Virus record (IMG/VR): IMGVR_UViG_3300044957_000763
Span: 124,001-188,000 of that record
Length of the DNA: 64,000 nt
Reading direction: 5' to 3' (one strand)
This document shows positions 12,200 through 44,042 of the stretch, one piece after another. The position numbers and the translations under genes are program-made. A model generated the notes under the pieces. That model worked only from the letters and a program-made list of their open reading frames with translations. It did not search any database and was not told where the DNA came from. Every line of letters starts with the position of its first letter. The stretch's first letter is position 1.

Positions 12200-13819
12200 A
12201 TGTCATCCAAAAAACTCATTTATGATACAGACGCCAGAGCCGCGCTCGAACAAGGCGTCAACCAAGTTGCCAACGCAGTCAAGGTTACACTCGGGCCTCG
12301 AGGCAGGAATGTAGTCCTTGAACAAAAATACAAGGGCTCACCAGTTATTACGAAAGACGGCGTAACTGTTGCTCGTGAAATCGAACTAGAAAATCCATAC
12401 GAGAACATGGGCGCTCAGTTATGCAAAGAAGTTGCAAGCAAGACCAACGATGTTGCAGGTGACGGAACTACGACAGCAACAGTTCTGGCACAAGCTCTTG
12501 TTAACGAGGGTATTCGATATGTCGCAGCCGGCGGTGGAAACCCCATTGCTGTGAAGCGCGGTATGGACAAGGCAGTCGAAGCTGTTGTTGAATACGTTGT
12601 TGGTCAGGCTTCACCAATTAAGGACAAACAGCAAATTGAGTTTGTTGCCACAATTTCTGGCAACAATGCAGAAGTTGGTCAAATCGTTGCTGATGCCTTT
12701 GAGAAGGTAGGAAAAGACGGCGTTATCACCGTTGAAGAATCCGGCCGCGAGGATTCATTGGAATATGCAGACGGTATGCAATTTGACCGTGGGTATTTAA
12801 GTCCGTATTTCATCAATGAAGCTGACAGGCAGGTCGTACAATATGATGATGCATATGTGCTGGTTCACGATGGAAAAATTAGTATGGGCCAACCTGTGCT
12901 GAAGTTCCTTGATACGTTTATCACTGGAATGGGTGGTACACCAAAGCCGTTGTTGATTATTGCCGATGATGTTGACCAGCAAGGGTTGGCTACGCTTATC
13001 GTCAACAGAATGCGAGTTGGACTGCCAGTTGTTGCGGTTAAGGCACCTGGTTTTGGTGACCGTCGCAAGGAAATGCTGCGTGATATTGCGATTCTCACCG
13101 GTGCCGAATGCTTAAGTGAAGAACTTGGCACTCAGTTGGAAAACGCAGAAATTGGCGTCCTTGGTCGAGTCAAGAGAGTTATTGTCGACAAGGATACAAC
13201 CACTCTTGTTGATGGTGCTGGCAAAAAGGAAGACATCCAAGCCCGCATCCAGGCTCTGAGAACATCTGTAAATAACACTGAAAGCAAGTATGACAAGGAG
13301 AAGTTGCAGGAGCGACTTGCTAAACTTAGCGGCGGTGTTGCAGTTATCAGAGTAGGTGCTTCAACCGAAACAGCAATGAAGGAGAAGAAGCATCGTTATG
13401 AAGATGCCATTAATGCCACTCGCGCCGCGATTGAAGAGGGTATTGTTCCAGGTGGTGGTGTCACACTGTTGCGTGCTTCTGTGGCCCTTGATAAGCTCAA
13501 AGGCGCTAATGATGATGAGCAGGTTGGAATTGGTATCGTACAACGTGCACTTGAGGCCCCGGTTCGTCAAATTGCCACTAATGCCGGTTACAAAGGTGAC
13601 CTTGTGGTTGAAAAAGTTCGCGGTCTAGAAGGCCACTTCGGTCTCGATGCGTCAACTGGTGAATATGTCGACTTGATTAAAGCAGGAATCATTGACCCAG
13701 TCAAGGTTACCCGCTCTACTATCGAGAACGCGGCGTCAATCGCTGGTTTGGTTCTTACCACCGAGGCAATTGTAGTTGAAAATCCAACTGCAAAAGAAAA
13801 TGACAGTATGGAGATGTAG
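12200..13819 (+). CDS. groEL: Chaperonin GroEL
   Basis: [49 protein letters not shown]. Confidence 0.99.
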
Positions 13820-14936: not shown

Positions 14937-16172
14937 GTCAACTACCACACGCACAAGGCGTGTGGCTTGCTACGAGGGGCTCCGAAGGAGACCTGAGCAA
15001 TAGGGAGATTGACTGCTCCCCTAATTTAGCTATATTTTTGCTGGCGTTAAAGTCAGCGTTCTCTGTATGTCCGCAGGACATACAGAGAAATTTAGCTTGA
15101 CTCTTTCTATTTGCCTTGGCGCAATGTCCGCATTCGCTACACGTCACAGACGTGTAGCGAGCGGGAACAATAGCCAAAGGAACTCCATAGAGCTCAGCTT
15201 TATACGTGATATAGCCTCTGAGTTGGGCGAATGCCCAACTCATTCTCTCGTTTCGATTTTCCTTCCTGACCGTTACTCGCTTGTTGATATGCGTTAGCTC
15301 CTCCAGAGCTAACGCCATTTGAGTGCCTTTGGCTTTCGAAACGATTAGTTTAGAAATGACGTGATTGACGTCTTTTCTAAATCTGGACTCTTTCTGTCCA
15401 GTTGTTTTAATTCTTCTCTTTGCAGAGCGTGTTCCACGCTTCTGCAATCTTTGTTTATGAGAATGATATTGCTTTCGTTTCTTTTCGATGTGTTCTCCAG
15501 AGAACACATCTCCATCTGAAGTAACAGCAATGTTCTTCACTCCCAAGTCCACGCCTATGACGCCTTTGGCGTCATAGGCTGATTCTGTTGGAATATCAAG
15601 AGTGCAGAGCAAGTAGAATTTGTTGTTTTGATATACTAAATCCACTTGTCCTTTTCTGTATTTGAACTTGTCTTTATCGTAGACTTGAATTGGGATTTCC
15701 ATTCTACCATCATTAGTCCAAATATTGACAGTTCCTGAATCCCTAAACGTGATTACTCTGTCATCGTAGACGACAGCAGAAGTTCTTTTGAAGAAATTTC
15801 TCTGATGTCTGTTTCTCTTGACTTTATAGGAGTCGCTTACGACTCCTATAGCTCTTACAACGAGTTGTGAAGAGAAATCTGGCAACGCTTCGCGCTGCTT
15901 TTTGTAAACTATATGATGCAATTGTACTTTTTGATATTCCTTGGCTTCAAATGCTTGACTGGAGATATCATTACAAACATCACTGAAAGTGTGCATCGTG
16001 CGCAATAGCGCACGATGTTGAATCTCGTTGGTATTGAGCCTCGCTTTCAATGTGATATTCATAATAAGGATATTATACAAATAGTGTTTGATGTCCTTAT
16101 TGTTCTTGGAAAATATGCTATAATAGTTGTAGAAGTTCAATTCCTCCCACCCACAAGGGGTGGGGTTTCTTC
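14937..16172 (-). mobile_element. IS200/IS605-family element carrying tnpB only (IS1341-like)
   Basis: Terminal hairpins GTCAACTACCACACGCACAAGGCGTGTGG (14937) and TTCCTCCCACCCACAAGGGGTGGGGTTTC (16141); no tnpA; sits between two intact genes. Confidence 0.75.
14938..16062 (-). CDS. tnpB: RNA-guided endonuclease TnpB
   Basis: RuvC I GVDLG, RuvC II LEEL, zinc finger CSECG...CMSCG, RuvC III NADFNAS; likely start MNITLKARL. Confidence 0.92.
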   Translation of the reverse strand: MNITLKARLNTNEIQHRALLRTMHTFSDVCNDISSQAFEAKEYQKVQLHHIVYKKQREALPDFSSQLVVRAIGVVSDSYKVKRNRHQRNFFKRTSAVVYDDRVITFRDSGTVNIWTNDGRMEIPIQVYDKDKFKYRKGQVDLVYQNNKFYLLCTLDIPTESAYDAKGVIGVDLGVKNIAVTSDGDVFSGEHIEKKRKQYHSHKQRLQKRGTRSAKRRIKTTGQKESRFRKDVNHVISKLIVSKAKGTQMALALEELTHINKRVTVRKENRNERMSWAFAQLRGYITYKAELYGVPLAIVPARYTSVTCSECGHCAKANRKSQAKFLCMSCGHTENADFNASKNIAKLGEQSISLLLRSPSEPLVASHTPCACGS

Positions 16173-16183
16173 TCACAAATACT

Positions 16184-17611
16184 ATGAAAGTCACACATGC
16201 GTCTATACGTCCAACCCTCGCCGCAACGGCATCAGGTCGACCGGCTTTAACCCCAGAACTGTTGGCCTCAGTCGCGGCTAGATATTCACGAAGTGACGAT
16301 GGTCTTGAAGCTATTTTGGGCAAGGTTGACCAGGATAACCCAGACAAGTCGATTGATGCCATTTTTGCGCATGTGGATTACGGACATGCATCTATTGCAG
16401 ATATGGTGCCTGTGGCAATGTTTATGGATGGTGTGTCTGTTTTTCTGGCGTACTATTTATGGACAGAAACTGCTATTGGTGCAGGTCAAGAATCTTCAAC
16501 CAGATACATCAAGATGTCAGTAGATGGCGTCATGCCCTTTGACATGACCGGTTTACCCGAGTCTCAGAACTCTGAGTGGACTTCATTTATCCATACTGCA
16601 TTCGCGTTATACGAAGATGCTTATAATTACTGGCTTGCACTTGCTGAGGAATCACCTGAAATCACACGCATCCCAGAATCATTGTTGAACGACACTAGTG
16701 ATAAAGCACAAAAGCAAGTGGCGAGAATGCAGCGCAATTTTGCCTTTGACCGTGCTCGATATTTTCTGCCGGTCGCCGCACTTACCAATGTAATGATTGT
16801 GCAGTCGGCAAGAGAATGGGCCAGAGTGGCTAATATTTTGAACTCTCATCCGTGTCCAGAGTTCAACATGCTTGGTAAATTGATTGTGGATGAAATGCAA
16901 CTCGTGTGCCCTAGAATGTGTCGACATACAGGTGCAACTGAAGCAACACGTAGAATGCTTTCTAACGAACTAGAGGTCACACGTGCGTTTCGATGCGGAC
17001 TGTCACATAACCACTCGTTGCCAGAGTTTGGGAAAATGCCTGCTGAGAGAGGTTCATCATGCTCTATGCAACCAGAGGCTAATGTAGAGCTTTTTAATGT
17101 AGACAACCCGCTCAACAGCCTAGCATTGTCATCTTCATCACGTGCCAATAGGTACTCTGCATTTGGAAGTTCAGTACGCCGAACTACAGTGCGATTTAGT
17201 TGGGACGCAGTGGCTATGGCCGAGATTCGAGACTTGAACAGGCACAGAACCGGATTCAAATGGTGTCCGCTAAGTCCGCAAGGCTTCTATTGCGCCATGG
17301 ATGAATTACCACCCGATGATGTCGTAAATTTTCAAGCCTTTGAGAGATTTGGATGGAAATTCAGCGTTCGAGCAGCGAATGAACTGTGGAACAGAAGTGT
17401 TGGATATGAGTATTGGACATTGCTGGGTACGCAGTACTACTTTGAACACACCACACAACTTGATAAGTTCATCTACGAAGGAGAATTGCGCACTGGCATT
17501 GGTTCTCATTATCGCTACGCCAGGCACTTGCACGATGCGTTGAATGAACTATATCGAATCGAGCCAGAATTGCGACATCTCATTATGGAAGGAACTGCAG
17601 AGCCTGAGTGA
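16184..17611 (+). CDS. thyX: Flavin-dependent thymidylate synthase, double-domain type
   Basis: YGHASIAD, QESSTRY, DRARYFLP, RDLNRHR. Confidence 0.8.
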   Translation: MKVTHASIRPTLAATASGRPALTPELLASVAARYSRSDDGLEAILGKVDQDNPDKSIDAIFAHVDYGHASIADMVPVAMFMDGVSVFLAYYLWTETAIGAGQESSTRYIKMSVDGVMPFDMTGLPESQNSEWTSFIHTAFALYEDAYNYWLALAEESPEITRIPESLLNDTSDKAQKQVARMQRNFAFDRARYFLPVAALTNVMIVQSAREWARVANILNSHPCPEFNMLGKLIVDEMQLVCPRMCRHTGATEATRRMLSNELEVTRAFRCGLSHNHSLPEFGKMPAERGSSCSMQPEANVELFNVDNPLNSLALSSSSRANRYSAFGSSVRRTTVRFSWDAVAMAEIRDLNRHRTGFKWCPLSPQGFYCAMDELPPDDVVNFQAFERFGWKFSVRAANELWNRSVGYEYWTLLGTQYYFEHTTQLDKFIYEGELRTGIGSHYRYARHLHDALNELYRIEPELRHLIMEGTAEPE

Positions 17612-20130: not shown

Positions 20131-20485
20131 GGGCGTGTAAGGGAGTCGATTGGCACTCTAACTTATCGTTGCAAGGCGTGGATGTATCCTTGGCCACGTA
20201 AAAATGGATGCAAAAAGTAAATGCGAATAACAACTTCGCACTCGCGGTCTAAGACATCGTGACATGAAGCGGATGTGAGTCAGTAACGTCCGTGGATTGC
20301 AGCCAAATCTGAATAGGCTCAAAGCACTTCTGTTCGTAGTGCCAGAGATGAAAAACAATCGAACTGGTGATGGAACGGGTTGGCCTTTTCCAAAGTCTGT
20401 CACGAGAAAAGAATAGAGGAGAACCTTGTGGTAGTGATAGGGTAAGGTGAACAACAACGCGGTTCAATTCCGCGCACGTCCACCA
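20131..20485 (+). ncRNA. ssrA: tmRNA; resume peptide (A)ANNNFALAV*
   Basis: Acceptor GGGCGTG/CACGTCC-ACCA with G3:U70; T-arm GCGG-TTCAATT-CCGC; tag ORF 20223-20252. Confidence 0.93.
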
Positions 20486-22903: not shown

Positions 22904-23801
22904 ACTCTTCAATGTAGGCTGGTAATCTGTGTTCTGGTTGCCAGCCTAATTCTGTTCTTGCTTTCGAAGCGTATTCCTTGGCTTGGAATCTTTCTCCTGG
23001 TCTTTCTGGAAGATATTCAATCGGCATACCGAACATCTCTGCCACTTCTTGAATAGAGTGTGATTCATTTGTTCCAAGCAAGTATCCATCTCCATTGCCC
23101 TTTTGTGCGGCAAGTCGAACTCCCTTTACTATATCCTGCACATGTGTGAAATCACGTCGCTGAGTCCCTGGTAGAACCACTGTGATTGGTCCCCCTGCTA
23201 AATATTGTTGCTCAAAAATGGCAATGACCGTTGCATAGTCGCCACTTGAGATGTGCCCAGGCCCATATACACTGAAGAAGTAAGTGATTGCGTATTTCAA
23301 TCCGAACCATTCACCATAGTTCTTGATAAGTTCACAGTTTTTTGCTTTTGTCCATGCGTATGGACTCAAATGCTCATCTTCGCCGTTATTTCCAAATTTT
23401 GAACTGGAAGCCGCATAAATGAGCTTGGCATTAGTTTGGCGACAATATTCAATCACATTGAATGTGCCGGTTTGGTTTGAGCGTTGTACTTCGATAATGT
23501 CTTTGAAGCTACCAGTGATTCGACTATATTCCCCAAGGTGGTATACGTGTGGAAATGTTATAGGAAATATCAGCGGGTCGGTCGCTGTATGACCCTCGAG
23601 ATACAATACTCTTGGGTCATCTATATGATTTGACTTGTATCCAGAAGAATAGCAGTCTAGAGACAGTACGTGCATGCGCGGGTGCGAATTCAAAAGGTCT
23701 CGTATTAAATGCGTTCCGATAAAACCAGCTCCGCCGGTAACCATCGCCCTCGGTGCATCAGTGGCATTTTGCCAAAACTCACGATTAAAACCGTGTAACA
23801 T
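22860..23801 (-). CDS. NAD-dependent epimerase/dehydratase (extended SDR)
   Basis: VTGGAGFIG, YAASSS, YAWTK (YxxxK), VYGP, RDFTHV. Confidence 0.92.
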   Translation of the reverse strand: MLHGFNREFWQNATDAPRAMVTGGAGFIGTHLIRDLLNSHPRMHVLSLDCYSSGYKSNHIDDPRVLYLEGHTATDPLIFPITFPHVYHLGEYSRITGSFKDIIEVQRSNQTGTFNVIEYCRQTNAKLIYAASSSKFGNNGEDEHLSPYAWTKAKNCELIKNYGEWFGLKYAITYFFSVYGPGHISSGDYATVIAIFEQQYLAGGPITVVLPGTQRRDFTHVQDIVKGVRLAAQKGNGDGYLLGTNESHSIQEVAEMFGMPIEYLPERPGERFQAKEYASKARTELGWQPEHRLPAYIEEFKGARGLLQQVPHN

Positions 23802-23827
23802 ATATGACTTGTACAGTATAATGAGCA

Positions 23828-24139
23828 TTGATGAGCTGGGCTGATTTTGCAAAAACTGCACTACGGAACGGAAACGATGTGACTATCCGTCCTCGAGGAC
23901 AATCAATGCGCGGCCGCGTTGAAAGCGGAGATGTGGTCAAATTGACGCCTGTAACCATGGAAGAGGTTGAAGTAGACGACGTGGTTTTAGTGCGAGTCAA
24001 AGGTCGCGATTACCTGCACCTGGTCAAAGCCAAGGATGGCGACCGAATCCTGATTGGTAACAATAGAGGAGTCAATAACGGATGGATTGGAGCCGGAGGC
24101 CTATACGGAAAAGCCACTGAAATAGCTTCGCCGGAGTAG
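23828..24139 (+). CDS. S24/S26 peptidase-like protein
   Basis: GQSM serine motif and GDVV...DVVLV pattern. Confidence 0.6.
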   Translation: MMSWADFAKTALRNGNDVTIRPRGQSMRGRVESGDVVKLTPVTMEEVEVDDVVLVRVKGRDYLHLVKAKDGDRILIGNNRGVNNGWIGAGGLYGKATEIASPE

Positions 24140-24165
24140 TTTTTGGACTTTTTTCGAAAAGGGCC

Positions 24166-24194
24166 TTGACACGAGAAGGAGTTCGGTGTATAAT
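24166..24194 (+). promoter_or_regulatory. Consensus sigma70 promoter for the tRNA array
   Basis: TTGACA-17 nt-TATAAT; second TGTATAAT at ~24247. Confidence 0.85.
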
Positions 24195-24289
24195 CTCAGA
24201 AAGTAGAAATCGGTGGAACCTTTCGACGCGCCAATCGTCAATTGGTGTATAATAGAAAGAACCACTTAGGAAAAAAGGAAATTCGAACA

Positions 24290-24394
24290 ATGTTATTGCT
24301 TGTTAACGCCATGGCTATTAAAGAATCTGCCGCAATTTTTGCGGTTGAGCCGTGGTTTGTCGTACCAGCAGAACACACCCGGTCGAGGACGTAA
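24290..24394 (+). CDS. 34-aa putative leader peptide
   Basis: AGGAA SD; MLLLVNAMAIKESAAIFAVEPWFVVPAEHTRSRT*; followed by a terminator. Confidence 0.55.
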   Translation: MLLLVNAMAIKESAAIFAVEPWFVVPAEHTRSRT

Positions 24395-24421
24395 CCAGAA
24401 ATCCTAATCAAACAGATTTAG

Positions 24422-24461
24422 AGTGGGAGTCCCGACCAAAAGGGGCTCCCACTTATTTTTT
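24422..24461 (+). terminator. Intrinsic terminator (attenuator) upstream of the tRNA array
   Basis: AGTGGGAGTCCC/GGGGCTCCCACT stem plus TATTTTTT. Confidence 0.85.
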
Positions 24462-24519
24462 GCAAACATCGACATTATGTAAGCCGCAAGGCTGACGACA
24501 ACAAACAGGTTGGCTTGAT

Positions 24520-24593
24520 AGGAGTATGGTCTAATGGCATGACGCTAATCTCCAAAATTATCAGTCGGGGTTCGATTCCCCGTGCTCCTGCCA
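24520..24593 (+). tRNA. tRNA-Trp(CCA)
   Basis: AGGAGTA/TGCTCCT-GCCA; loop CT-CCA-AA. Confidence 0.85.
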
Positions 24594-24725
24594 AGCTAAT
24601 CTAAAACCGCCCTCGGGCTTCTTGGTCAAGATTAGACCAAGAATAAGCACTTTGATAGTTGAATATAGTTTGAGAAACAAGAGACCTGGAATGGGTCCCG
24701 GTGCGCCGGGACCCGAAGATTTCAT

Positions 24726-24804
24726 GAGGGATGGGACTGCTCGGGGTGGTCGCCTCATTTGCAATGAGGATTTCAGGTGGGTTCAAATCCCACATTCTCC
24801 ACCA
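24726..24804 (+). tRNA. tRNA-Ala(TGC)
   Basis: CCTCA-TTTGCAA-TGAGG; G3:U70; one acceptor mismatch. Confidence 0.75.
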
Positions 24805-24810
24805 AGGTTT

Positions 24811-25087
24811 TCGTTGCACAGTAATCGGACCCTTACACTGTTGCCTTGTGTAAACTTCCGATGAAAATTTGGGACAATAGGAAAATTGTTCACCTTGGGC
24901 AATGTGGTAACGCGCATTGTATGGCTTGCAACAGGCAAATAAGTTGCAAGTGAATAACTGCCTCGACGTTCGTCGCCGCAGGAAGGAAATGGCCAGCCGG
25001 CTTAACCACCCGGTGTGCCATGGAGGGTAAACCGACAGTCGAATGACTACCCGTGACTGATGAAAAGCAGACAGAGGGGCAACGAAA
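24811..25087 (+). ncRNA. Unclassified structured RNA candidate (~280 nt)
   Basis: Series of hairpins (CTTGCAAC/GTTGCAAG; ATGGC/GCCAT enclosing CCGG/CCGG; TCGGA/TCCGA) between tRNAs; no credible ORF. Confidence 0.45.
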
Positions 25088-25094
25088 TACAAAT

Positions 25095-25170
25095 ATCCGC
25101 ATGGCGCAATTGGTGGCGCACTTGCCTGATTAGCGAGTGGTTGTGAGTTCGAGTCTCACTGCGGATACCA
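25095..25170 (+). tRNA. tRNA-Ile(GAT), atypical U37
   Basis: ATCCGCA/TGCGGAT-ACCA; loop CT-GAT-TA. Confidence 0.8.
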
Positions 25171-25179
25171 AGTTTAAGT

Positions 25180-25257
25180 GGGGACGCATGTACCAAGGGC
25201 AGGCGACACATCTTTGCAAGATGAGTGTGGAGGGTTCGATTCCCTTCGTTTCCACCA
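25180..25257 (+). tRNA. tRNA-Ala(TGC)
   Basis: GGGGACG/CGTTTCC-ACCA with G3:U70; loop TT-TGC-AA. Confidence 0.75.
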
Positions 25258-25260
25258 AAT

Positions 25261-25339
25261 GCTGGCATGGTGTAGATGGTCTTAACACGCCGGACTTTCA
25301 ATTCGGAGATGACGGGTTCAAGCCCCGTTGCCAGTACCA
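25261..25339 (+). tRNA. tRNA-Glu(TTC)
   Basis: GCTGGCA/TGCCAGT-ACCA; loop CT-TTC-AA. Confidence 0.85.
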
Positions 25340-25345
25340 ATTGAT

Positions 25346-25420
25346 GACCCGTTAGTTTAACGGTTAGAATCTGTGACTTTCATTCACAGGACGCGAGTTC
25401 GACTCTCGCACGGGTCACCA
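25346..25420 (+). tRNA. tRNA-Glu(TTC)
   Basis: GACCCGT/ACGGGTC-ACCA; loop CT-TTC-AT. Confidence 0.9.
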
Positions 25421-25529
25421 ATGTGCAGTGATTGAACACCTACTGCTATGACTGATGGACAGACATCTGACTGCCGAGGAAAGAATCGGCCGTGTGTCGG
25501 GGTGAGATGGTGAAGCCCCGGCCTTTAAT

Positions 25530-25606
25530 GGGGATGTAGCTCAGTTGGTCAGAGCGTTGGTTTGAAAAACCAGAGGTCGCCGGTTCGGTCCCGGCTATCC
25601 CCACCA
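25530..25606 (+). tRNA. tRNA-Phe(GAA)
   Basis: GGGGATG/TATCCCC-ACCA; loop TT-GAA-AA. Confidence 0.88.
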
Positions 25607-25612
25607 GATTTT

Positions 25613-25689
25613 GCCTCGGTAGCTGAGTTGGTTCAAGCGCCTGCCTGAAGAGTAGAAGTAGGTCGGTTCGATTCCGTCGTGGGGCACCA
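25613..25689 (+). tRNA. tRNA-Phe(GAA), somewhat degenerate
   Basis: Loop CT-GAA-GA; TTCGATT T-loop; ACCA end; acceptor mismatch. Confidence 0.7.
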
Positions 25690-25703
25690 GATTTTTGTAG
25701 TTT

Positions 25704-25856
25704 CAATTTGCGGTTGAATCAAAAACGGAACAAATTGTGGAGTGAAACCACACTGTGTGTAAGTCGTCAGAACCTGAGGTCATTAGGAAGAAGCGCAACC
25801 AGACACAAGAGGTACATAGTGACCAGTTGGATAGCCTTATCCACCGTGCCGCAAAC
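25704..25856 (+). ncRNA. Unclassified structured RNA candidate (~150 nt)
   Basis: Ends pair (TTTGCGG/CCGCAAA); internal hairpins GTGG/CCAC and GGATA/TATCC. Confidence 0.4.
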
Positions 25857-25863
25857 AATTTAT

Positions 25864-25939
25864 GGGGCTGTAGTTCAGTTGGGAGAACGCTTCAATGGCA
25901 TTGAAGAGGTCGTGGGTTCGACCCCCATCAGCTCCACCA
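25864..25939 (+). tRNA. tRNA-Ala(GGC)
   Basis: GGGGCTG/CAGCTCC-ACCA; loop AT-GGC-AT. Confidence 0.92.
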
Positions 25940-25946
25940 GGTTTAT

Positions 25947-26025
25947 CTAGGCGTAGAGGAGTTTGGCTTTTCTCGCCTCCCTTGGAAGGAGGAGCACGTG
26001 GGTTCGAATCCCACCGCCTAGACCA
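25947..26025 (+). tRNA. tRNA-Pro(TGG)
   Basis: CTAGGCG/CGCCTAG-ACCA; loop CT-TGG-AA. Confidence 0.9.
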
Positions 26026-26214
26026 ATTTATATGCTCGGGTAACGGCAAGCGGCAAAGCCATTTCCTCGACGCGGTTTTTATCCAGTGCTTGCTGGAGGT
26101 CTAGTTGCGTTGATTTTTCCGCAATTACAGCAGCACCAGGGCGTATAGTTGCGGTGAATGCTTTGCGAGACGTCGCAATGGCGACTTGCGCCCTTCAATT
26201 TTGTAGATAAATCT

Positions 26215-26290
26215 CGGCGGGAGGCCCATTTGGATGAGCATTCCCCTGATAAGGGAAAGGTAGCGGGTTCGAATCCCGCACCGCCGACCA
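26215..26290 (+). tRNA. tRNA-Ile(GAT)
   Basis: TTCCC-CTGATAA-GGGAA; GCGGG-TTCGAAT-CCCGC; ACCA. Confidence 0.85.
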
Positions 26291-26310
26291 GGTTTATGCC
26301 ATAATAAGCT

Positions 26311-26565
26311 ATGAAAGTCAGTCGATTGAAAGAACTATTGGCACAATGCGATGATAACGATGACATTATCATGTTCGCTGACTCAGAGGGAAACTCATTT
26401 CATCCGTTGTCTGAAGAAGGTGTCTCTATAGGCGTTTACGCGTGGGACGGCGAGTATTACGCAGAAATCGGTTTAAGAGAACTCACGTCAGAACTTGAAC
26501 AATCAGGATATTCTGAAGACGATGTGATGGAAAAAGGTCGCCCTTGCATTGTCTTGTGGCCATAG
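26311..26565 (+). CDS. Acidic hypothetical protein
   Basis: 84-aa ORF between tRNAs. Confidence 0.65.
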   Translation: MKVSRLKELLAQCDDNDDIIMFADSEGNSFHPLSEEGVSIGVYAWDGEYYAEIGLRELTSELEQSGYSEDDVMEKGRPCIVLWP

Positions 26566-26579
26566 TAGTATAATGCATA

Positions 26580-26654
26580 TGCGGGGTGGAGCAGAGGTAG
26601 CTCGTCTGGTTCATAACCAGGAGGTCGTGGGTTCAATTCCCTCCCCCGCTCCCA
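26580..26654 (+). tRNA. tRNA-Met(CAT), initiator-like
   Basis: Unpaired 1:72; GCGGGG/CCCCGC; loop TT-CAT-AA. Confidence 0.8.
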
Positions 26655-26660
26655 ATTTAT

Positions 26661-26740
26661 GCGGCTCAGGCAATAATAGCAGTGGTCTGCTGGTTCGGCT
26701 CATGCCCAGACTGCCGGGGTTCAACTCCCAACCCGCTCCA
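26661..26740 (+). tRNA. Degenerate tRNA-Met(CAT)-like gene
   Basis: Loop CT-CAT-GC, TTCAACT T-loop, TCCA end; irregular D region. Confidence 0.45.
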
Positions 26741-26753
26741 GTTTACGACAGTA

Positions 26754-27125
26754 ATGAAACAAATTCCAGCACCGCCTTGTGAGCATTGCGCAGCGTATTG
26801 TTGTAAGCAAAAAGGTCACGATTTTGCAGTTCTACTTGATGAGCATGAGGCAAAGCAATTTGACCATGCATGTTTGGTAGAGAAGCCTTCAAAATATGGT
26901 CTGGAAGAGGGTCAATGGTGTCTGCCATATGAAAATGGCAAATGTGTGTATCTCGGAGATGATGATAGATGCACGGTATATGAAACTAGACCACAATTGT
27001 GCAGAGATTTCAACTGTGTCAATGGATACAAGTGCAGGGGCGAGTATCATGGTTTTTTCCTTGAAGACCACCCGAAAGTGGTCAAGTTGATTGAGTTGCA
27101 TGTAATAAACACCAAAACCTCTTGA
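26754..27125 (+). CDS. YkgJ-family cysteine-cluster (Zn/Fe-chelating) protein
   Basis: CEHCAAYCC...CVYL...CTVYETRPQLCRDF. Confidence 0.85.
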   Translation: MKQIPAPPCEHCAAYCCKQKGHDFAVLLDEHEAKQFDHACLVEKPSKYGLEEGQWCLPYENGKCVYLGDDDRCTVYETRPQLCRDFNCVNGYKCRGEYHGFFLEDHPKVVKLIELHVINTKTS

Positions 27126-27149
27126 CATTTCTTGAGAAAGTGGTATAAT
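27122..27149 (+). promoter_or_regulatory. sigma70 promoter within the tRNA array
   Basis: TTGACA-16 nt-TATAAT with extended TG. Similar (TGn)TATAAT boxes at ~20115, 20519, 22276, 27835, 30233, 33708, 42285. Confidence 0.8.
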
Positions 27150-27236
27150 AAGGTGTCGGGAGTTGAGTATGCAAATTCATGACGTCAACAGAGTTATGAG
27201 CTCTGATTGACTGCAGAAAGGCTCCCAAGATAAAGG

Positions 27237-27311
27237 CGCGGGATGGAGCAGTTAGGTAGCTCGCTTGGCTCATAACCAGGAGGTCATTGGTTCAAATCCA
27301 ATTCCCGCACC
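27237..27311 (+). tRNA. Initiator tRNA-fMet(CAT)
   Basis: C1:A72 mismatch; loop CT-CAT-AA; CCA not fully encoded. Confidence 0.88.
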
Positions 27312-27353
27312 TTTGTTCACTAAGTGACCTACATTTTGTACGAGACGAAGAGA

Positions 27354-27458
27354 TTGGTTCACCTTAACGGCCCTAAGGTAGTCGAAAGATGAAGTGACTT
27401 GTAGAAGCAAGCCCAGTGCCCAGTGCGCGAAAGCGTATACGGCGGCCACCAACCACCA
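27354..27458 (+). ncRNA. Unclassified structured RNA ending in ACCA
   Basis: TTGGT/ACCAA closing helix; two GAAA tetraloop hairpins; CCACCA tail. Confidence 0.35.
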
Positions 27459-27487
27459 GTTTCACAACTTGTTCGTGCAATTCCAAC

Positions 27488-27565
27488 GGGTCTGTAGCTT
27501 AGATGGCTTAAAGCGCGCCTCTCATAAGGGCGAGAGCGTCGGTTCGAATCCGACCAGACCTACCA
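27488..27565 (+). tRNA. tRNA-Met or Ile2 (CAT)
   Basis: GGGTCTG/CAGACCT-ACCA; loop CT-CAT-AA. Confidence 0.88.
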
Positions 27566-27575
27566 AGTTTCTCAT

Positions 27576-27651
27576 GGGGGTGTAGTTTAATTGGGTGAAC
27601 ATTGCTTTCGCACGGCAAAGGTTGTGGGTTCGAGCCCCATCATCTCCACCA
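27576..27651 (+). tRNA. tRNA-Ala(CGC)
   Basis: G3:U70; loop TT-CGC-AC; ACCA. Confidence 0.88.
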
Positions 27652-27654
27652 AGA

Positions 27655-27808
27655 ATTCCTGGTTCTGCAGACTAGGATAAACAAGATGGCGTCGTGGATA
27701 GACACGATTATTCGCCTAGTGCCAACAAGCCTAAAGCGAACTGACAGCAGCGCTCGATTGACAAGAATAAGTCTGAACCAAAGGAATCAAAAACGGTCCT
27801 TGTGGGTA
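27655..27808 (+). ncRNA. Unclassified structured RNA candidate (~150 nt)
   Basis: Nested end pairing ATTCCT..GGTT..CAGACT / AGTCTG..AACC..AGGAAT. Confidence 0.4.
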
Positions 27809-27859
27809 TTCAATCCCACCCATCTTGGAATTTTGTGGTATAATGGAAATAACAGGTTT

Positions 27860-27922
27860 GCGGAACGAAGTCATTGGGTTATCATTAGGAAAAGACACAC
27901 CCACCGACATCAACTTGTCCGC
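27860..27922 (+). ncRNA. Y RNA-like element A (short, no tRNA module)
   Basis: GCGGAACGAAG...GGGTTATC...ACCCA...CTTGTCCGC; parallels the Y RNA Ro60 helix GGUCCGA/CUUGAC. Confidence 0.6.
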
Positions 27923-27936
27923 TTAAAATTTGTGTG

Positions 27937-28081
27937 TTCGGTACGATTGAAATACGGTTATCCTATCATAAAGGGGAAATTCAGGTTCGACTCCTGAGGC
28001 CGGCTCTGTGCTTTCAGCAGAAAGCCGGCTTAGTGTAATGGTTAGCACGCCTAAAAACATCGTTTTCGCCACTTGACCGAA
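27937..28081 (+). ncRNA. YrlA-like element B: permuted tRNA fold with anticodon arm (CAT)
   Basis: Order: anticodon arm, T-arm, acceptor 3' strand GGCCGGC, 18-nt linker, acceptor 5' strand GCCGGCT, D-arm; enclosed by a Y-like stem. Confidence 0.75.
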
Positions 28082-28097
28082 TGTGCAAAACAAATAT

Positions 28098-28318
28098 GGT
28101 GTCCGGGGAGCGGTGAAATTCCGTGGAACGGCTGCGTGGTTGCAAACGCGCAGTGCAGTGGGTGCCTCTGCGAAAGCAAGACCACCCCGGCGAGCCTCAA
28201 ATAGATTTCACGTGGCTGTGTGTAGAACCAGTCGTAGGGTAAAGTGAAACGTTTGTCCATTCGTAAAATGGACTGGAGACGGGTTGCGAGCGGCCCCTCG
28301 GCAATAATGCCGCTCAAC
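28098..28318 (+). ncRNA. Unclassified highly structured RNA (~220 nt)
   Basis: CCGGGG/CCCCGG multiloop with CGG-TGAAATT-CCG T-loop and GAAA hairpin; TTTCAC/GTGAAA domain; three further hairpins. Confidence 0.55.
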
Positions 28319-28328
28319 AGGTTTTAAG

Positions 28329-28403
28329 ATTTGCGGAACGAAGCATCAACGGTTATCACTCACAGCAAATGAACACGACACCGTTAGCGTTCACTTGTCC
28401 GCA
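28329..28403 (+). ncRNA. Y RNA-like element C (short)
   Basis: GCGGAACGAAG...AACGGTTATC...ACCGTT...CTTGTCCGC. Confidence 0.6.
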
Positions 28404-28418
28404 TTCAATTTCTTAAAT

Positions 28419-28566
28419 CTGCGCGGTACGAACGAGTTACGGTTATCCTTCTGTTAAAAGGGTTGCCCAGGTTCGATTCCTGGTCTCGGGACTAAAGACC
28501 ATCTTTAGACTCGAGATAATGTAGTGGTAGCATGCTAAAACATCGTTCTCACCCCTTGACCGCCAG
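28419..28566 (+). ncRNA. YrlA-like element D: permuted tRNA fold with anticodon arm (GTT, Asn)
   Basis: TCCTT-CTGTTAA-AAGGG, CCAGG-TTCGATT-CCTGG, TCTCGGG / 18-nt hairpin linker / CTCGAGA, D-arm ATGT-AGTGGTA-GCAT. Confidence 0.75.
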
Positions 28567-28583
28567 ATTTAAGAACACAGTTT

Positions 28584-28707
28584 CCGGTACGAATGAATAT
28601 TGGTTATCAATTAGTTCGACTCTAATATTCCCCTCTCAGATGTGGTATCATCCACGTTTGAAAGGGGAATCGCCCTGGTGGGCACCCAATTTCAAAACCT
28701 TGACCGG
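28584..28707 (+). ncRNA. YrlA-like element E: T-arm, closed acceptor stem, D-arm (no separate anticodon arm)
   Basis: ATTAG-TTCGACT-CTAAT, ATTCCCC/GGGGAAT joined by a hairpin, enclosed by CCGGTACGAA/CTTGACCGG. Confidence 0.7.
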
Positions 28708-28713
28708 TAAAAT

Positions 28714-28790
28714 CGGGCCGTAGCGTAGCTTGGTATCGCGCCTCGTTTGGGACGAGGAGGTCGCCAGTTCGAATCTGGCCGGCCCGACCA
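28714..28790 (+). tRNA. tRNA-Pro(TGG)
   Basis: CGGGCCG/CGGCCCG-ACCA; loop TT-TGG-GA. Confidence 0.95.
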
Positions 28791-28797
28791 TTTTTTT

Positions 28798-28876
28798 CGA
28801 GCTGTAGCGTAGCTTGGTTTATCGCGCTTACCTGGGAGGTAAGAGGTCGTGGGTTCAAATCCCGCCAGCTCGACCA
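28798..28876 (+). tRNA. tRNA-Pro(GGG)
   Basis: CGAGCTG/CAGCTCG-ACCA; loop CT-GGG-AG. Confidence 0.93.
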
Positions 28877-28884
28877 AGTTTCAT

Positions 28885-28961
28885 CTGGGGTCAGACTCAA
28901 GGTGGGTCGCCTATTTCGGAAGTAGGACATTAGCGGGGTTCAATTCCCCGACCTCAGACCA
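28885..28961 (+). tRNA. tRNA-Pro(CGG)
   Basis: CTGGGGT/ACCTCAG-ACCA; loop TT-CGG-AA. Confidence 0.88.
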
Positions 28962-28975
28962 AATTCAAGTATAAT

Positions 28976-29197
28976 GTGGATATGGCAGGCGTAATACCAC
29001 AATACTATATCTTTGTGAAGCCGTATACAGTTGGTGGAACTACGATTCACCCAGGTGTTTCGCTAAAAGGTGAGTTTGAAGTGACTGATACTCATATTTC
29101 ACAAAAGGGCTCGACTTTATTGTCGAACATCCCCAAGGAATATCTTGAACCTTACACACCGCACAAGTTTGAGAAGAAGGTGCGAAAGAAAAAATAG
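28976..29197 (+). CDS. Small hypothetical protein
   Basis: 73-aa ORF after a TATAAT box; basic C-terminus. Confidence 0.55.
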   Translation: MDMAGVIPQYYIFVKPYTVGGTTIHPGVSLKGEFEVTDTHISQKGSTLLSNIPKEYLEPYTPHKFEKKVRKKK

Positions 29198-29200
29198 ATT

Positions 29201-29275
29201 CCACGGATGGTATAGTGGCAATACGCTTGCATTACAAGCAAGAGATTTAGGGTTCGATTCCCTAGCCGTGGACCA
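29201..29275 (+). tRNA. tRNA-Val(TAC)
   Basis: CTTGC-ATTACAA-GCAAG; ACCA. Confidence 0.85.
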
Positions 29276-29282
29276 GGTTTGT

Positions 29283-29358
29283 CCTCAATTAGCTCAGTTG
29301 GTAGAGCGCCTCGTTTACACCGAGGATGCCGGGGGTTCAAGTCCCTCATTGAGGACCA
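29283..29358 (+). tRNA. tRNA-Val(TAC)
   Basis: CCTCAAT/ATTGAGG-ACCA; loop TT-TAC-AC. Confidence 0.92.
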
Positions 29359-29363
29359 GAATT

Positions 29364-29684
29364 TCATGCAACATGTTTGTCTCCAGCTACGCTGGCAGAC
29401 TTATAAACAACCAGTGTGCAATCAGTGATTGCTTCGAAGTCTGATTCTTCATATGGTTCAATAACCATGATGTCGCCGGCGTTCAAGACGTAATCGCCCA
29501 TGCGACATTCTCCAGAGATTATCAACGTCACCTCAGTGCTGCACTTGTGGTAGTGCATGGCGTTTGTTTCGCCAGCCTTGTAAGATTTGACACCGACTTC
29601 TGCGGTTGTGGTTTTGAAAACACAAGGTTCAAAATTTCCTACGAACCACCCTCCTTTCATTGAGTTGTGCTGGAATATGCGCAT
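29364..29684 (-). CDS. Cupin-domain protein
   Basis: MHYHK..TEVTLIISG..GD cupin motifs. Confidence 0.8.
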   Translation of the reverse strand: MRIFQHNSMKGGWFVGNFEPCVFKTTTAEVGVKSYKAGETNAMHYHKCSTEVTLIISGECRMGDYVLNAGDIMVIEPYEESDFEAITDCTLVVYKSASVAGDKHVA

Positions 29685-29758
29685 GTTTAGTTTGTACAGG
29701 CGCTATAGCCATTAATATGGTTGTTGATTTCATCGGTGAGTTTGGTCTATAATAAGTA

Positions 29759-30010
29759 ATGGACAAAGAGATTCAACTAATACCATTGCCCGATGATTTT
29801 GAAGGAAGAGTCGAGACAGGCCCAGTGCAATTTGGAGACGATTGGCCAGGGGTTTTTATTCGAGGCGACAGTGCGGCATACTATGCGGCGTCCATTCGTG
29901 CTATTTTGGAAAAATATGGCGAACAGATGCATAGGATAATGGAAATAGTACCATTGGTTGGTTTGATGGAAGATTTGGGCAGTTCCAATTTGATTAATCG
30001 ACAGCAATGA
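29759..30010 (+). CDS. Hypothetical protein
   Basis: 83-aa ORF (RVETGPVQFGDDWPGVFIRGD). Confidence 0.65.
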   Translation: MDKEIQLIPLPDDFEGRVETGPVQFGDDWPGVFIRGDSAAYYAASIRAILEKYGEQMHRIMEIVPLVGLMEDLGSSNLINRQQ

Positions 30011-30051
30011 AGACGCTTCTTGGCTGTGCTCTGTGATTTCAAGAACAAGAT

Positions 30052-30126
30052 GCCCCGGTAGTTTAGCGGTCAGAATGTTGGATTCTCAATCCAGCGAGCG
30101 GAGTTCGAGTCTCCGTCGGGGTACCA
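30052..30126 (+). tRNA. tRNA-Glu(CTC)
   Basis: GCCCCGG/TCGGGGT-ACCA; loop TT-CTC-AA. Confidence 0.9.
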
Positions 30127-30142
30127 TTTTTGCAATGTATTC

Positions 30143-30218
30143 GCTCTCCGAGCACGGTTGGTTGTGCGCTGCCATGACACGGCAGAGGTCGTGAGTTCGA
30201 ACCTCACGGAGAGCACCA
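30143..30218 (+). tRNA. tRNA-Val(GAC)
   Basis: GCTCTCC/GGAGAGC-ACCA; loop AT-GAC-AC. Confidence 0.9.
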
Positions 30219-30247
30219 TTTTCAAATCTAAGTGGTATAATAACCAC

Positions 30248-30574
30248 ATGAATACGGTAACTGATTCTAGTTTTGGTAAAGAGGTCGAAGAAGCCTCAGA
30301 TGAACAAGTTGTCATAGTCAACTTTTCTGCTTCTTGGTGTGGTCCGTGCAAGGCAATGAGGCCGCAGGTTGAGGCTATTGAGGCAAAATCCACTGGTGCA
30401 AAATTCGTATATTGTGACATTGATGACGCACCTATGCAAACAGAAAAGTTTGGTGTTTTAGGTGTGCCAACATATGTCGTGATGCGCAACCGCAAAGAAC
30501 ACGCAAGATTCGCAGGCTCAGGCCCACAAGTGTTAAGTGGCATTCAAGAATCAATTGAAAAGTTTTCGGTTTAG
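30248..30574 (+). CDS. trxA: Thioredoxin
   Basis: FSASWCGPCK active site; cis-Pro GVPT. Confidence 0.93.
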   Translation: MNTVTDSSFGKEVEEASDEQVVIVNFSASWCGPCKAMRPQVEAIEAKSTGAKFVYCDIDDAPMQTEKFGVLGVPTYVVMRNRKEHARFAGSGPQVLSGIQESIEKFSV

Positions 30575-30575
30575 T

Positions 30576-30648
30576 ACCGGCGGTTCTGGGCCAGAGACTT
30601 CAAGCTCATATCTTGAAGGAATGGGTTCGATTCCCTTCGCCGGTACCA
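30576..30648 (+). tRNA. tRNA-Met(CAT)
   Basis: ACCGGCG/CGCCGGT-ACCA; TCAAG-CTCATAT-CTTGA. Confidence 0.75.
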
Positions 30649-30671
30649 GTTTTCTCAAACATATTCAACAT

Positions 30672-30746
30672 GGCCAACTGGTGTAATGGCAGCTCGCCTC
30701 TATCACACGGAGAAGGTTCTGGGTTCGATTCCCAGGTTGGCCACCA
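30672..30746 (+). tRNA. tRNA-Val(CAC)
   Basis: GGCCAAC/GTTGGCC-ACCA; loop AT-CAC-AC. Confidence 0.82.
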
Positions 30747-33727: not shown

Positions 33728-33803
33728 GCTCCAGTAGCTCAACGACAGAGCGGAGGTCTCTAACACCTCGACTGAGTGGGTTCAACTCCCACCTGGAGCA
33801 CCA
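33728..33803 (+). tRNA. Amber-suppressor-type tRNA (CTA)
   Basis: GCTCCAG/CTGGAGC-ACCA; GAGGT-CT-CTA-AC-ACCTC; own TGCTATAAT promoter. Confidence 0.88.
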
Positions 33804-41500: not shown

Positions 41501-41646
41501 CACTTGGTGTTAAACCCGGTCCAGTGATTGGTCAAATACTCAACGAGGCATGGCAAATGCAGATTGTGGGCACGTTCACGAGTCGTGAGGATGCTCTTGC
41601 TTGGCTGTCGAATCGAGTGAATTCTGACGCCACGTTAACGCAGTAG
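38578..41646 (+). CDS. cca: CCA-adding tRNA nucleotidyltransferase with HD domain, intein and extra insertion
   Basis: VGGAVRD, DIDVE, RRDFTMN, EDPLRVLR, ERIAEEW, PQDPEWHPEG, VHDIAK. Confidence 0.9.
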   Translation: MWYRTIVAARNGVYVSELNLPINETLHAILEDLRSQGFKALVVGGAVRDAVMGVVPKDIDVEVYGADYDTLHTTLTKYGRADVVGKSFGVLKLRTPDGQDYDFSVPRRDSKTGDGHTGFKITVDHTMTPEQAAARRDFTMNCFSGETKILTKSGPKSLMELCGQQCEVLDGNGEWTHADVRSFGVQKLLKLTVTRNRIVKTIYATPNHRWFIKNKHTYVFDRERTTENLRCGHMLPSVYPIIQSTQLDNESICRGFVFGDGNIVVFDSGNAVSIANFCGEKDSHLLPLFEKLDMGRPPHDIPSGKRISSLPPNWKLETPEFSESYEYLLGWLSGYFAADGCVDSKGCPVLSSCNRENLEYVEQLCRCVGIGTYQISQCKIGSGYNSKSECWSLGFVRKTLFSDFFIIPEHRKRFNSATNSRNRTAWKVVSVDDSDRIEEVYCAVVPTTHTFCLDGNLLTSNCLAYDPLTSEIHDYYGGIEDLENGVLRATTEAFKEDPLRVLRGMQFAARYGMRLDPDTAKMCREIVDAHDELATERIAEEWMKLAIKGKQPGTALEYLADTGWLKHYPELEAMFDVPQDPEWHPEGWEHFDAPEHKRNLYTKEDQNVSHWQDVIGFRGDAPSGSKMVSTPYKSTNPERQHENSPEPHIYVTMDVPIDSYWRYVYEQDRIDAKPIANLAVRHLMSQYGGAELNGKTHYRMIGSLKASPAVYCHAERQGDHVELTVGLHSELSKELLDRGCPLHVYVKMGDVATHTAHVMDAAAAVAERDGLIGDDRATLVLAAMVHDIAKPQTTEIQQRAGRGMSVTSIGHEKAGEPIAVDLLKRMGIKKSIRDKVGPMVARHLAHVTTTPTKSNVRKLARDIAPASIEELAKLIEADHSGRPPLPQELPRQAQDMLDIARKDGVANGKPAPIVQGKHVLPYYGGASGKHIGEAVQEAYRAYLNGAYDNFEGGQQWLSNYLQSRASMLRGSDVIALGVKPGPVIGQILNEAWQMQIVGTFTSREDALAWLSNRVNSDATLTQ
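39001..39960 (+). mobile_element. Intein (320 aa) with LAGLIDADG homing endonuclease
   Basis: Begins CFSGET, block B TPNHRW, GFVFGDG and GYFAADG, ends VYCAVV...LLTSN; +1 residue Cys. Confidence 0.92.
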
Positions 41647-43802: not shown

Positions 43803-43879
43803 CCGTCGCTAGCTCAATGGTTAGTAGCAATTCCCTCTTAAGGAAAAGGTTCTGGGTTCAAGTCCCAGGCGACGGACCA
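43803..43879 (+). tRNA. tRNA-Lys(CTT)
   Basis: CCGTCGC/GCGACGG-ACCA; loop CT-CTT-AA. Confidence 0.88.
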
Positions 43880-43883
43880 ATAC

Positions 43884-43955
43884 CCCTCCGTGGCGCAAAG
43901 GCAGCGCAGGTGACTTTTAATTACTTGGTTACAGGTTCGAATCCTGTCGGGGGGA
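43884..43955 (+). tRNA. tRNA-Lys(TTT), no encoded CCA
   Basis: CCCTCCG/CGGGGGG-A; loop CT-TTT-AA. Confidence 0.85.
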
Positions 43956-43963
43956 CACAATTT

Positions 43964-44042
43964 GGCGGCTTAACTCAGTTGGGTCAAGAGTACTCGGCTT
44001 TTAACCGAGGGGTCGTGGGGTCCCAGTCCACAGTCGCCACCA
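43964..44042 (+). tRNA. tRNA-Lys(TTT), atypical T-loop
   Basis: GGCGGCT/AGTCGCC-ACCA; CTCGG-CTTTTAA-CCGAG; T-loop lacks TTC. Confidence 0.75.

Follow-up and report, generated by a model that had tools for sequence, protein, structure and literature searches.

A phage genome of 479 kb carries, in front of four of its tRNA gene arrays, a short leader ORF whose codons are those read by the tRNAs of the array that follows. At the locus analysed here, this ORF lies between a consensus promoter and an intrinsic terminator, suggesting a ribosome-mediated transcription attenuator in which the phage probably makes those tRNAs only when ribosomes run short of them; in the absence of transcript or ribosome data, the regulation itself is inferred from the sequences. 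The leader/array match holds for the Asn/His/Tyr array, the Trp/Ala/Ile/Glu/Phe/Pro/Met/Val array (this locus), the Leu/Cys/Arg/Gly/Ser/Thr/Asp array and the Gln array, with a combined P of about 1e-9, and every mismatched leader/array pairing is non-significant. A relative with a 73% identical neighbouring protein has all four leaders. Five further contigs carry the leader of this locus, with an unbroken block of 23-25 cognate codons in four of them. Their terminators differ, yet the antiterminator helix is kept through compensatory changes.

The window, i.e. the whole 64,000-nt stretch of DNA that was analysed, corresponds to bases 124001-188000 of a 478,840-bp IMG/VR phage record (IMGVR_UViG_3300044957_000763) with direct terminal repeats. 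The genome carries 62 tRNA genes plus a tmRNA. The tRNAs sit in arrays, which we designated a to e, each with its own amino-acid set. Together they cover all 20 amino acids without overlap, apart from Met and Ile. The window also encodes other translation and chaperone functions: a CCA-adding enzyme, a class II aminoacyl-tRNA synthetase, GroEL and ClpB.

Coordinates of the leader region and of the tRNA arrays (window positions unless marked as genome positions).
Feature	Position	Strand	Description
UP-like element	24140-24165	+	T-run, CG, A-run just upstream of the -35 hexamer
Sigma-70 consensus promoter	24166-24194	+	TTGACA, 17-nt spacer, TATAAT; transcription start inferred near 24201
Possible second -10 element	24248-24253		TATAAT
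Shine-Dalgarno site	24275-24279	+	AAGGA, 10 nt before the ATG
Leader ORF	24290-24394	+	34 codons plus TAA (24392-24394); peptide ends HTRSRT
Cognate-codon block	24302-24373	+	Codons 5-28 (Val5 to Glu28); 21 of 24 codons read by tRNAs of the array downstream
Hairpin inside the ORF	24329-24345	+	GCCGCA, loop, TGCGGT; candidate RNA polymerase pause or synchronising hairpin
Antiterminator 5' strand	24381-24390	+	GGTCGAGGAC, in the non-cognate tail codons; ends 1 nt before the stop codon
Intrinsic terminator	24421-24461	+	5' arm 24421-24433, loop 24434-24441 (8 nt), 3' arm 24442-24454, then ATTTTTT; 13 bp, -25.7 kcal/mol
Antiterminator 3' strand	24429-24437	+	GTCCCGACC, the top five bases of the 5' arm plus four loop bases
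Small GNRA-loop hairpin followed by GACGAC	24479-24499	+	Between the terminator and the first tRNA; possibly a processing or stabilising element
tRNA-Trp (CCA)	24520-24593	+	First gene of array b
Array b	24520-30746		22 tRNAs: Trp, Ala, Ile, Glu, Phe, Pro, Met, Val
Internal perfect promoter	27122		Within array b
Array c	43803-44041		Lys
Array a	genome 32.7-33.2 kb	-	Asn, His, Tyr
Array d	genome 205-218 kb	-	Leu, Cys, Arg, Gly, Ser, Thr, Asp, Ile-UAU, Met
Array e	genome 256.4-256.7 kb	-	Gln

The original prediction, made from the sequence alone, had described a promoter, a leader ORF, a terminator and an alternative pairing at this locus, and all of these elements were confirmed. The promoter matches the sigma-70 consensus at 12 of 12 positions. 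It is one of only seven perfect matches in the genome, six of which lie at or inside tRNA arrays, and it is conserved in the relatives L004, L005, L011 and L152 (contigs described below). The UP-like element also recurs in front of the promoters of other tRNA arrays of the genome and of L004, L005 and L011; its function is inferred from resemblance to rRNA promoters. A possible second promoter was not counted, because its TATAAT is kept in L004 but lost in L005 and L011. The terminator starts 26 nt after the stop codon, not 27 nt as first stated, and the 'Y-like RNAs' of the original prediction have no Rfam support.

To examine the alternative pairing, we folded the transcript only up to the terminator loop. 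The minimum-free-energy partner of the 5' arm was GGTCGAGGAC, which pairs with GTCCCGACC over 9 bp with one bulged A. The best duplex between the end of the ORF and the arm plus loop was -20.6 kcal/mol, against -13.5 +/- 2.9 kcal/mol for shuffled sequences (P about 0.02). The antiterminator (about -12 to -20 kcal/mol) is weaker than the terminator (-26 kcal/mol) and covers only the top of the 5' arm and part of the loop, where hairpin folding would nucleate, so it must act kinetically.

We then looked upstream of the other arrays. Three of them have the same layout: an UP-like element, a near-consensus promoter, a short ORF preceded by AGGA or AAGGA at 8-11 nt and, for a and d, a strong terminator 130-170 nt before the first tRNA. 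The a leader (37 aa) has 8 Asn, 2 His and 3 Tyr. The e leader has five consecutive Gln codons that use both CAA and CAG. The d leader has a block of 28 codons in which 27 are read by tRNAs of array d, and it uses all six Leu codons and ATA for Ile. The match between leader codons and array tRNAs, which the original prediction had not noticed, was tested with wobble rules and the phage's own codon usage as background. The four matched leader/array pairs gave P = 1e-4, 2e-3, 2e-4 and 6e-3, all 12 mismatched pairs were non-significant, and Fisher combination gave 1e-9. Over the whole b leader, 21 of 33 codons are cognate (P=2e-3). The d leader samples 21 of 21 distinct anticodons of its array, whereas random peptides sample 13.3 +/- 2.0 (P<5e-5), and the b leader samples 13 of 15. 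In a scan of all six frames of the whole genome with no prior choice of ORF, the longest run of d-set residues was the d leader, the longest Gln run was the e leader, and the 15-residue run of the b leader was second for its set. A hydrophobic-peptide artefact is unlikely, as Leu and Gly, the commonest membrane residues, are absent from the b block, and the d set is chemically heterogeneous.

The Lys array has no convincing leader; it is preceded only by a 12-codon ORF with two Lys codons and no clear terminator, and a KKKKK run at genome 256376-256362 is an off-frame reading of an HNH endonuclease gene. The Gln leader has no intrinsic terminator and may work through Rho. In addition, the internal promoter at 27122 can express the distal part of array b without the leader, and none of the internal consensus promoters has a sampler leader.

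The S24-peptidase gene next to the leader has many homologues, and syntenic contigs carry homologous b leaders: L004, L099 and L152 (92% identity on that protein), L005, L006 and L007 (84%), L011 (73%), and L008 and L010 (71% and 69%). The six homologues compared (this phage, L004, L005, L011, L008 and L010) share one plan: 4-5 non-cognate codons, then a cognate block, then a 6-10-codon non-cognate tail that carries the antiterminator strand. The block is unbroken in L004 and L011 (23/23), L008 (25/25) and L010 (24/24), and is 21/24 here and 21/23 in L005. Two of the three off-set residues of this phage (Lys, Ser) are Ile and Pro in L004. The reading frame is kept in all six, and third-position changes dominate (46, 41 and 77 differences at codon positions 1, 2 and 3). 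L011 is G002, a contig of a metagenome-assembled genome that contains a colinear relative of the whole phage, and it has all four leader types before the corresponding arrays. Its b leader has 25 of 34 cognate codons (P=2e-5) and samples 15 of 15 anticodons, its d leader has 30 of 48 (P=3e-3) and its e leader has six Gln in a row, whereas its a leader is only weakly enriched (7 of 35, P=0.1); Fisher combination gave 1.5e-8. The depth of comparison is small, with about four independent lineages for the b leader and two genomes for the others.

The terminator stems of the b homologues have four different sequences, all strong (-25 to -32 kcal/mol), although the U-tracts are poor in L008 and L010. 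Only the segment that pairs with the ORF tail is retained. On a MAFFT alignment not fitted to any structure, the 8-pair helix was 87.5% paired, against 21-46% when the partner strand was slid by 1-3 columns. Two pairs changed on both sides: G-C to U-A in L005, and C-G to U-A in L008 and L010. In L011, L008 and L010 the bulged A acquires a U partner, and the 3' strand lies wholly within the 5' arm, whereas in this phage, L004 and L005 it covers only the top of the arm plus the loop. The original prediction had named the absence of this complementarity in homologues as a refutation, and the helix passed this test. The d leaders of both genomes keep GGTCGAG paired with CTCGACC as islands in otherwise 57%-identical sequence, and the two a leaders use different, co-varying sequences at the same place. 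In all 12 leaders analysed, the best partner of the terminator arm lies in the last codons of the ORF (individual P 0.001-0.18 against shuffled sequences, 0.009-0.12 in the six b homologues; combined P 4e-7). However, the dinucleotide-shuffle test of the best duplex was not significant for the a- and d-type leaders of this genome, whose single-sequence tests are weak (P=0.18 for a).

We also folded partial transcripts with a 28-nt ribosome mask. In this model, the helix of the b leader formed with the A site at codons 1-27 and was lost at codons 30-35; for d it formed at codons 1-31, and for a at codons 1-26. Those are the zones that hold the cognate codons. In the b- and d-type leaders the cognate block ends 7-12 nt before the strand, which we read as about the distance from the A site to the leading edge of the ribosome. 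The strand lies 10 nt before the stop codon in L008 and L010, 17 nt in a and 24 nt in d. A ribosome at the stop codon would not cover the strand in a and d, and the folding only partly rescues this, so the simple masking picture fits this locus best. The hairpin inside the ORF was 100% paired in the six homologues, and its loop-closing pair changes from A-U to G-C in L008 and L010; a pause role is inferred only by analogy with the trp leader.

These results support the attenuation geometry of the original prediction and, with fairly good confidence, a ribosome-mediated transcription attenuator that gates the tRNA array, with a leader peptide that acts as a codon sampler. In the proposed mechanism, host RNA polymerase starts at a very strong promoter, and a ribosome loads on the leader and has to read a block of about 24 codons, almost all decoded by the tRNA species encoded just downstream. 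If any of those tRNAs is scarce, the ribosome would stall inside the block, leaving the tail of the ORF naked to pair with the top of the terminator's 5' arm and its loop as they emerge. That would block nucleation of the terminator hairpin, and the polymerase would read on into the tRNA genes. If the tRNAs are plentiful, the ribosome would run into the tail and park at the stop codon, covering the strand, so that the terminator forms and transcription stops 60 nt before tRNA-Trp. The result would be negative feedback that holds supply of exactly those tRNAs, with induction when host tRNAs are depleted. Translation of the ORF, stalling, termination efficiency, the direction of the switch and its physiological trigger, including the tRNA cleavage or stalling suggested by the original prediction, are inferences.

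A less likely alternative is that translation of the leader does sense the tRNAs but is read out in another way: by Rho-dependent polarity, by ribosome-dependent processing or stability of the precursor RNA, or by arrest by the nascent peptide itself (the conserved AVEPWF..P core, as with TnaC or SecM). The Gln leader has the codon run without an intrinsic terminator, and its spacer is C-rich and G-poor (32% C against 16-20% G), as in Rho-dependent tna control. The residue order of the core is conserved, not only its composition, which could mean that the peptide itself matters. The small hairpin plus GACGAC after the terminator is conserved, and in the a- and d-type leaders the strand is too far from the stop codon for simple masking. 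On the other hand, three of four leader types in two genomes, and two distant phages, have a canonical strong terminator right after the ORF, the helix between the ORF tail and the terminator arm covaries, and the other leader types do not share the AVEPWF motif. It is also unlikely that the promoter, ORF and terminator form an independent short transcription unit or a constitutive leaky insulator that throttles a very strong promoter, with the array expressed by fixed readthrough and from internal promoters. The terminator is stronger than the antiterminator, the promoter at 27122 drives tRNA-Met directly, and short ORFs are frequent by chance; but this reading does not explain why each leader's codons match its own array and not the others, why the cognate block is purified in relatives, or why the ORF tail co-evolves with the terminator arm. 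We consider it very doubtful that the two complementary segments are half-sites of a DNA operator for a dimeric protein. They form an inverted repeat at the DNA level, and a TCGA-containing motif recurs in the b- and d-type leaders. However, their spacing (about 38-49 bp) varies between homologues, one half is always the top of a terminator stem, G-U pairs and a bulge are tolerated, which is RNA-like behaviour, and the a-type leaders and that of L155 (a distant phage, below) use unrelated sequences in the same positions. Chance is very unlikely, even though the single-sequence shuffle test gave only P about 0.02 and the ORF is short, given the combined P values in two genomes, the genome-wide run ranks, the conservation and the covariation.

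Leader-peptide attenuators of enterobacterial amino-acid operons (trp, his, leu, thr, ilvGMEDA, pheA) also have a promoter-proximal short ORF with regulatory codons, an intrinsic terminator before the first structural gene, and an alternative helix that excludes the terminator, with ribosome position choosing between the two (a choice that is inferred for the phage leaders); the Gln runs of five or six codons look like a his or pheA leader. Here, the regulated genes would be tRNAs rather than biosynthetic enzymes, and the regulatory codons form a block covering 8 (this locus) or 7-8 (d type) amino acids and nearly every anticodon species of the array. The system is phage-encoded and present in several copies that divide the genetic code between them. 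The antiterminator strand lies in the last codons of the ORF, and no clear anti-antiterminator was seen; a pairing of only 4-5 bp between the TCGA motif in the SD-ATG spacer and the strand appears in some minimum-free-energy folds, and we do not claim it. An untranslated leader is therefore predicted to read through rather than super-attenuate. The pheST attenuator (pheM leader) of E. coli controls a component of the translation apparatus that handles the same amino acid as the leader's codons, but it controls a synthetase, uses one amino acid and is chromosomal. T-box riboswitches sense tRNA status and switch between terminator and antiterminator in a leader of about 200-300 nt, but they bind uncharged tRNA directly through a specifier codon and the T-box sequence, need no translation, and control synthetase, biosynthesis or transport genes. 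The tna operon leader is a possible analogue for the Gln leader, although TnaC senses free tryptophan through the nascent peptide, not tRNA supply. rRNA/tRNA operon promoters with UP elements share the consensus -35/-10 pair and the T/A-rich upstream element in front of stable-RNA genes, but they are controlled at initiation (ppGpp, initiating NTP, Fis). Rfam searches returned nothing beyond tRNAs and tmRNA: no T-box, riboswitch or Y-RNA-like match was found, and the Trp, His, Leu, Thr and Phe leader families gave no match at E up to 10 in 24140-24530. We found no report of leader-peptide control of tRNA genes or phage tRNA arrays in the full-text literature searched, which did not cover most subscription journals.

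Why phages carry tRNAs, and when they use them, is still debated; the proposals include codon-usage matching, replacement of degraded host tRNAs and escape from tRNA-cutting defences. A leader that reads out the supply of exactly the tRNAs encoded behind it would show that the phage treats tRNA shortage as a measured variable. It would also extend leader-peptide attenuation, known for amino-acid operons and one synthetase operon, to stable-RNA genes, to phages, and to a design in which one short peptide monitors up to 21 anticodon species, and such leaders could be used as compact, modular reporters of individual tRNA pools. It is about as likely as not that the phage runs a multi-channel tRNA homeostat, in which the 20 amino acids are divided among five array groups (NHY; WAIEFPMV; K; LCRGSTD plus Ile-UAU; and Q) and at least four groups are gated by their own test-strip peptide, each switching on only when its own tRNAs limit translation. 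That could happen after host tRNA decay, codon-usage mismatch, or attack by host anticodon nucleases. The Asn/His/Tyr group contains three of the four GUN-anticodon tRNAs, a class that may be cut by colicin-E5-type nucleases, and Lys, a likely target of PrrC, stands alone. As the layout also occurs with other tRNA groupings in distant huge phages, it may be a general way of regulating phage tRNA arrays.

To look for further examples, we first compared 23800-24600 with the GenBank phage collection, and no similar DNA was found. Scans of IMG/VR with neighbouring proteins gave only one distant relative (L002/G001), in which the S24-peptidase gene sits inside a tRNA array, the contig starts 660 nt before its first tRNA, and no leader or terminator is recognisable. 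Other S24 homologues (P0008, P0010, P0014) lie in non-syntenic, partly bacterial contexts. Pattern scans for the conserved core listed 58 short in-frame ORFs, of which only the known loci plus L099 were real, and stricter patterns found only G002, or nothing. Through a CxxCxxCC protein encoded inside array b, we reached two AT-rich, more distant phages, L155 and L154. L155 has a promoter-like site, a 19-codon ORF rich in Pro, Tyr, Leu and His, and a terminator whose 5' arm pairs with the last three codons of the ORF; the array that follows is Pro, Tyr, Leu, Leu, Ser, His (12 of 18 at amino-acid level, P=1e-3). L154 has a 22-codon ORF whose last ten residues are nine Phe/Asp/Ser/Gly, then a terminator, then the array Gly, Asp, Phe ... 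Ser, Ser. Different arrays therefore go with different leaders, as the model predicts. Finally, in the small GNRA-loop hairpin between the terminator and tRNA-Trp, three of the four pairs show compensatory changes across the six homologues.

To investigate whether the other tRNA arrays of the genome are preceded by comparable elements, we examined their upstream regions. Three further leader ORFs, all outside the window, were found before the Asn/His/Tyr, Leu/Cys/Arg/Gly/Ser/Thr/Asp and Gln arrays, and each was enriched in the codons of its own array. The first two were followed by strong terminators, whereas the Gln leader was followed by a C-rich spacer with no terminator. Two AT-rich, distantly related phage contigs (L155 and L154) also had a short ORF plus terminator before tRNA arrays of different composition; the ORFs leaned towards those arrays' amino acids, and both contigs shared an upstream motif, TTTTTTCAAATCTCACAAA.

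Across the whole genome, perfect TTGACA-N16-18-TATAAT promoters were almost confined to tRNA arrays (six of seven), often with a GACTTTTTT-type upstream element, suggesting that the arrays are read by unmodified host RNA polymerase. An internal perfect promoter was found 88 nt before tRNA-Met in the array that begins with tRNA-Trp (array b), with no leader ORF match and no terminator; the distal half of this array can therefore be expressed independently of the attenuator. In the 5' untranslated region of the b leader, the motif CGTGGAAC was conserved in the b leaders of three related contigs (L004, L005 and L011), and it was also seen in two other leaders of G002 (the same sequence as L011), a contig of a metagenome-assembled genome.

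A small GNRA-loop hairpin followed by GACGAC was identified between the terminator and tRNA-Trp. It was conserved in all six homologues, with compensatory changes in three of its four pairs, and is possibly a processing or stabilising site. Conserved non-tRNA spacers were also found inside the array; one is a GC-rich hairpin that was also present in L004 and in two further related contigs, L008 and L010. The original prediction had included Y-like RNAs in this array; however, no Rfam match was found, so these are not supported by Rfam.

Table. Locations of the additional features in the window, in the rest of the genome and in related sequences.
Location	Strand	Feature
genome 33583-33470	-	Leader ORF, Asn/His/Tyr array
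genome 217967-217827	-	Leader ORF, Leu/Cys/Arg/Gly/Ser/Thr/Asp array
genome 256884-256780	-	Leader ORF, Gln array
window 20131-20485		tmRNA
window 24208-24222		Motif CGTGGAAC
window 24479-24499		GNRA-loop hairpin followed by GACGAC
window 24594-24725 and 24805-25094		Conserved non-tRNA spacers
window near 24690-24715		GC-rich hairpin (one of the spacers)
window 27122-27149		Internal perfect promoter
window 33728-33803; genome 233368-233442		tRNAs with suppressor-type anticodons, CTA (reads TAG) and TCA (reads TGA)
window 38578-41643, 45008-46264, 12200-13816, 58295-60811, 14941-16362 (-)		CCA-adding enzyme with a LAGLIDADG insert, class II (Asp/Lys/Asn-type) aminoacyl-tRNA synthetase, GroEL, ClpB and TnpB/Cas12f-like protein
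L155:7879-7990		Short ORF plus terminator
L154:8922-9050		Short ORF plus terminator
G002:C5 (JAFDWS010000002.1), about 95-520 kb		Colinear relative of the whole phage

The tmRNA (tag ANNNFALAV) lies 4 kb upstream of the leader, and relatives L008 and L010 carry one at the same place. The aminoacyl-tRNA synthetase is encoded right after the Lys tRNAs. The presence of tRNAs with suppressor-type anticodons may indicate stop-codon reassignment in some genes; CTA tRNAs also occur in the distant phages L154 and L155. The colinear relative of the whole phage lies inside a 1.36-Mb contig of an Armatimonadota metagenome-assembled genome that also carries scattered single tRNAs; it is either a giant prophage or a chimeric assembly, and it hints at the host phylum.
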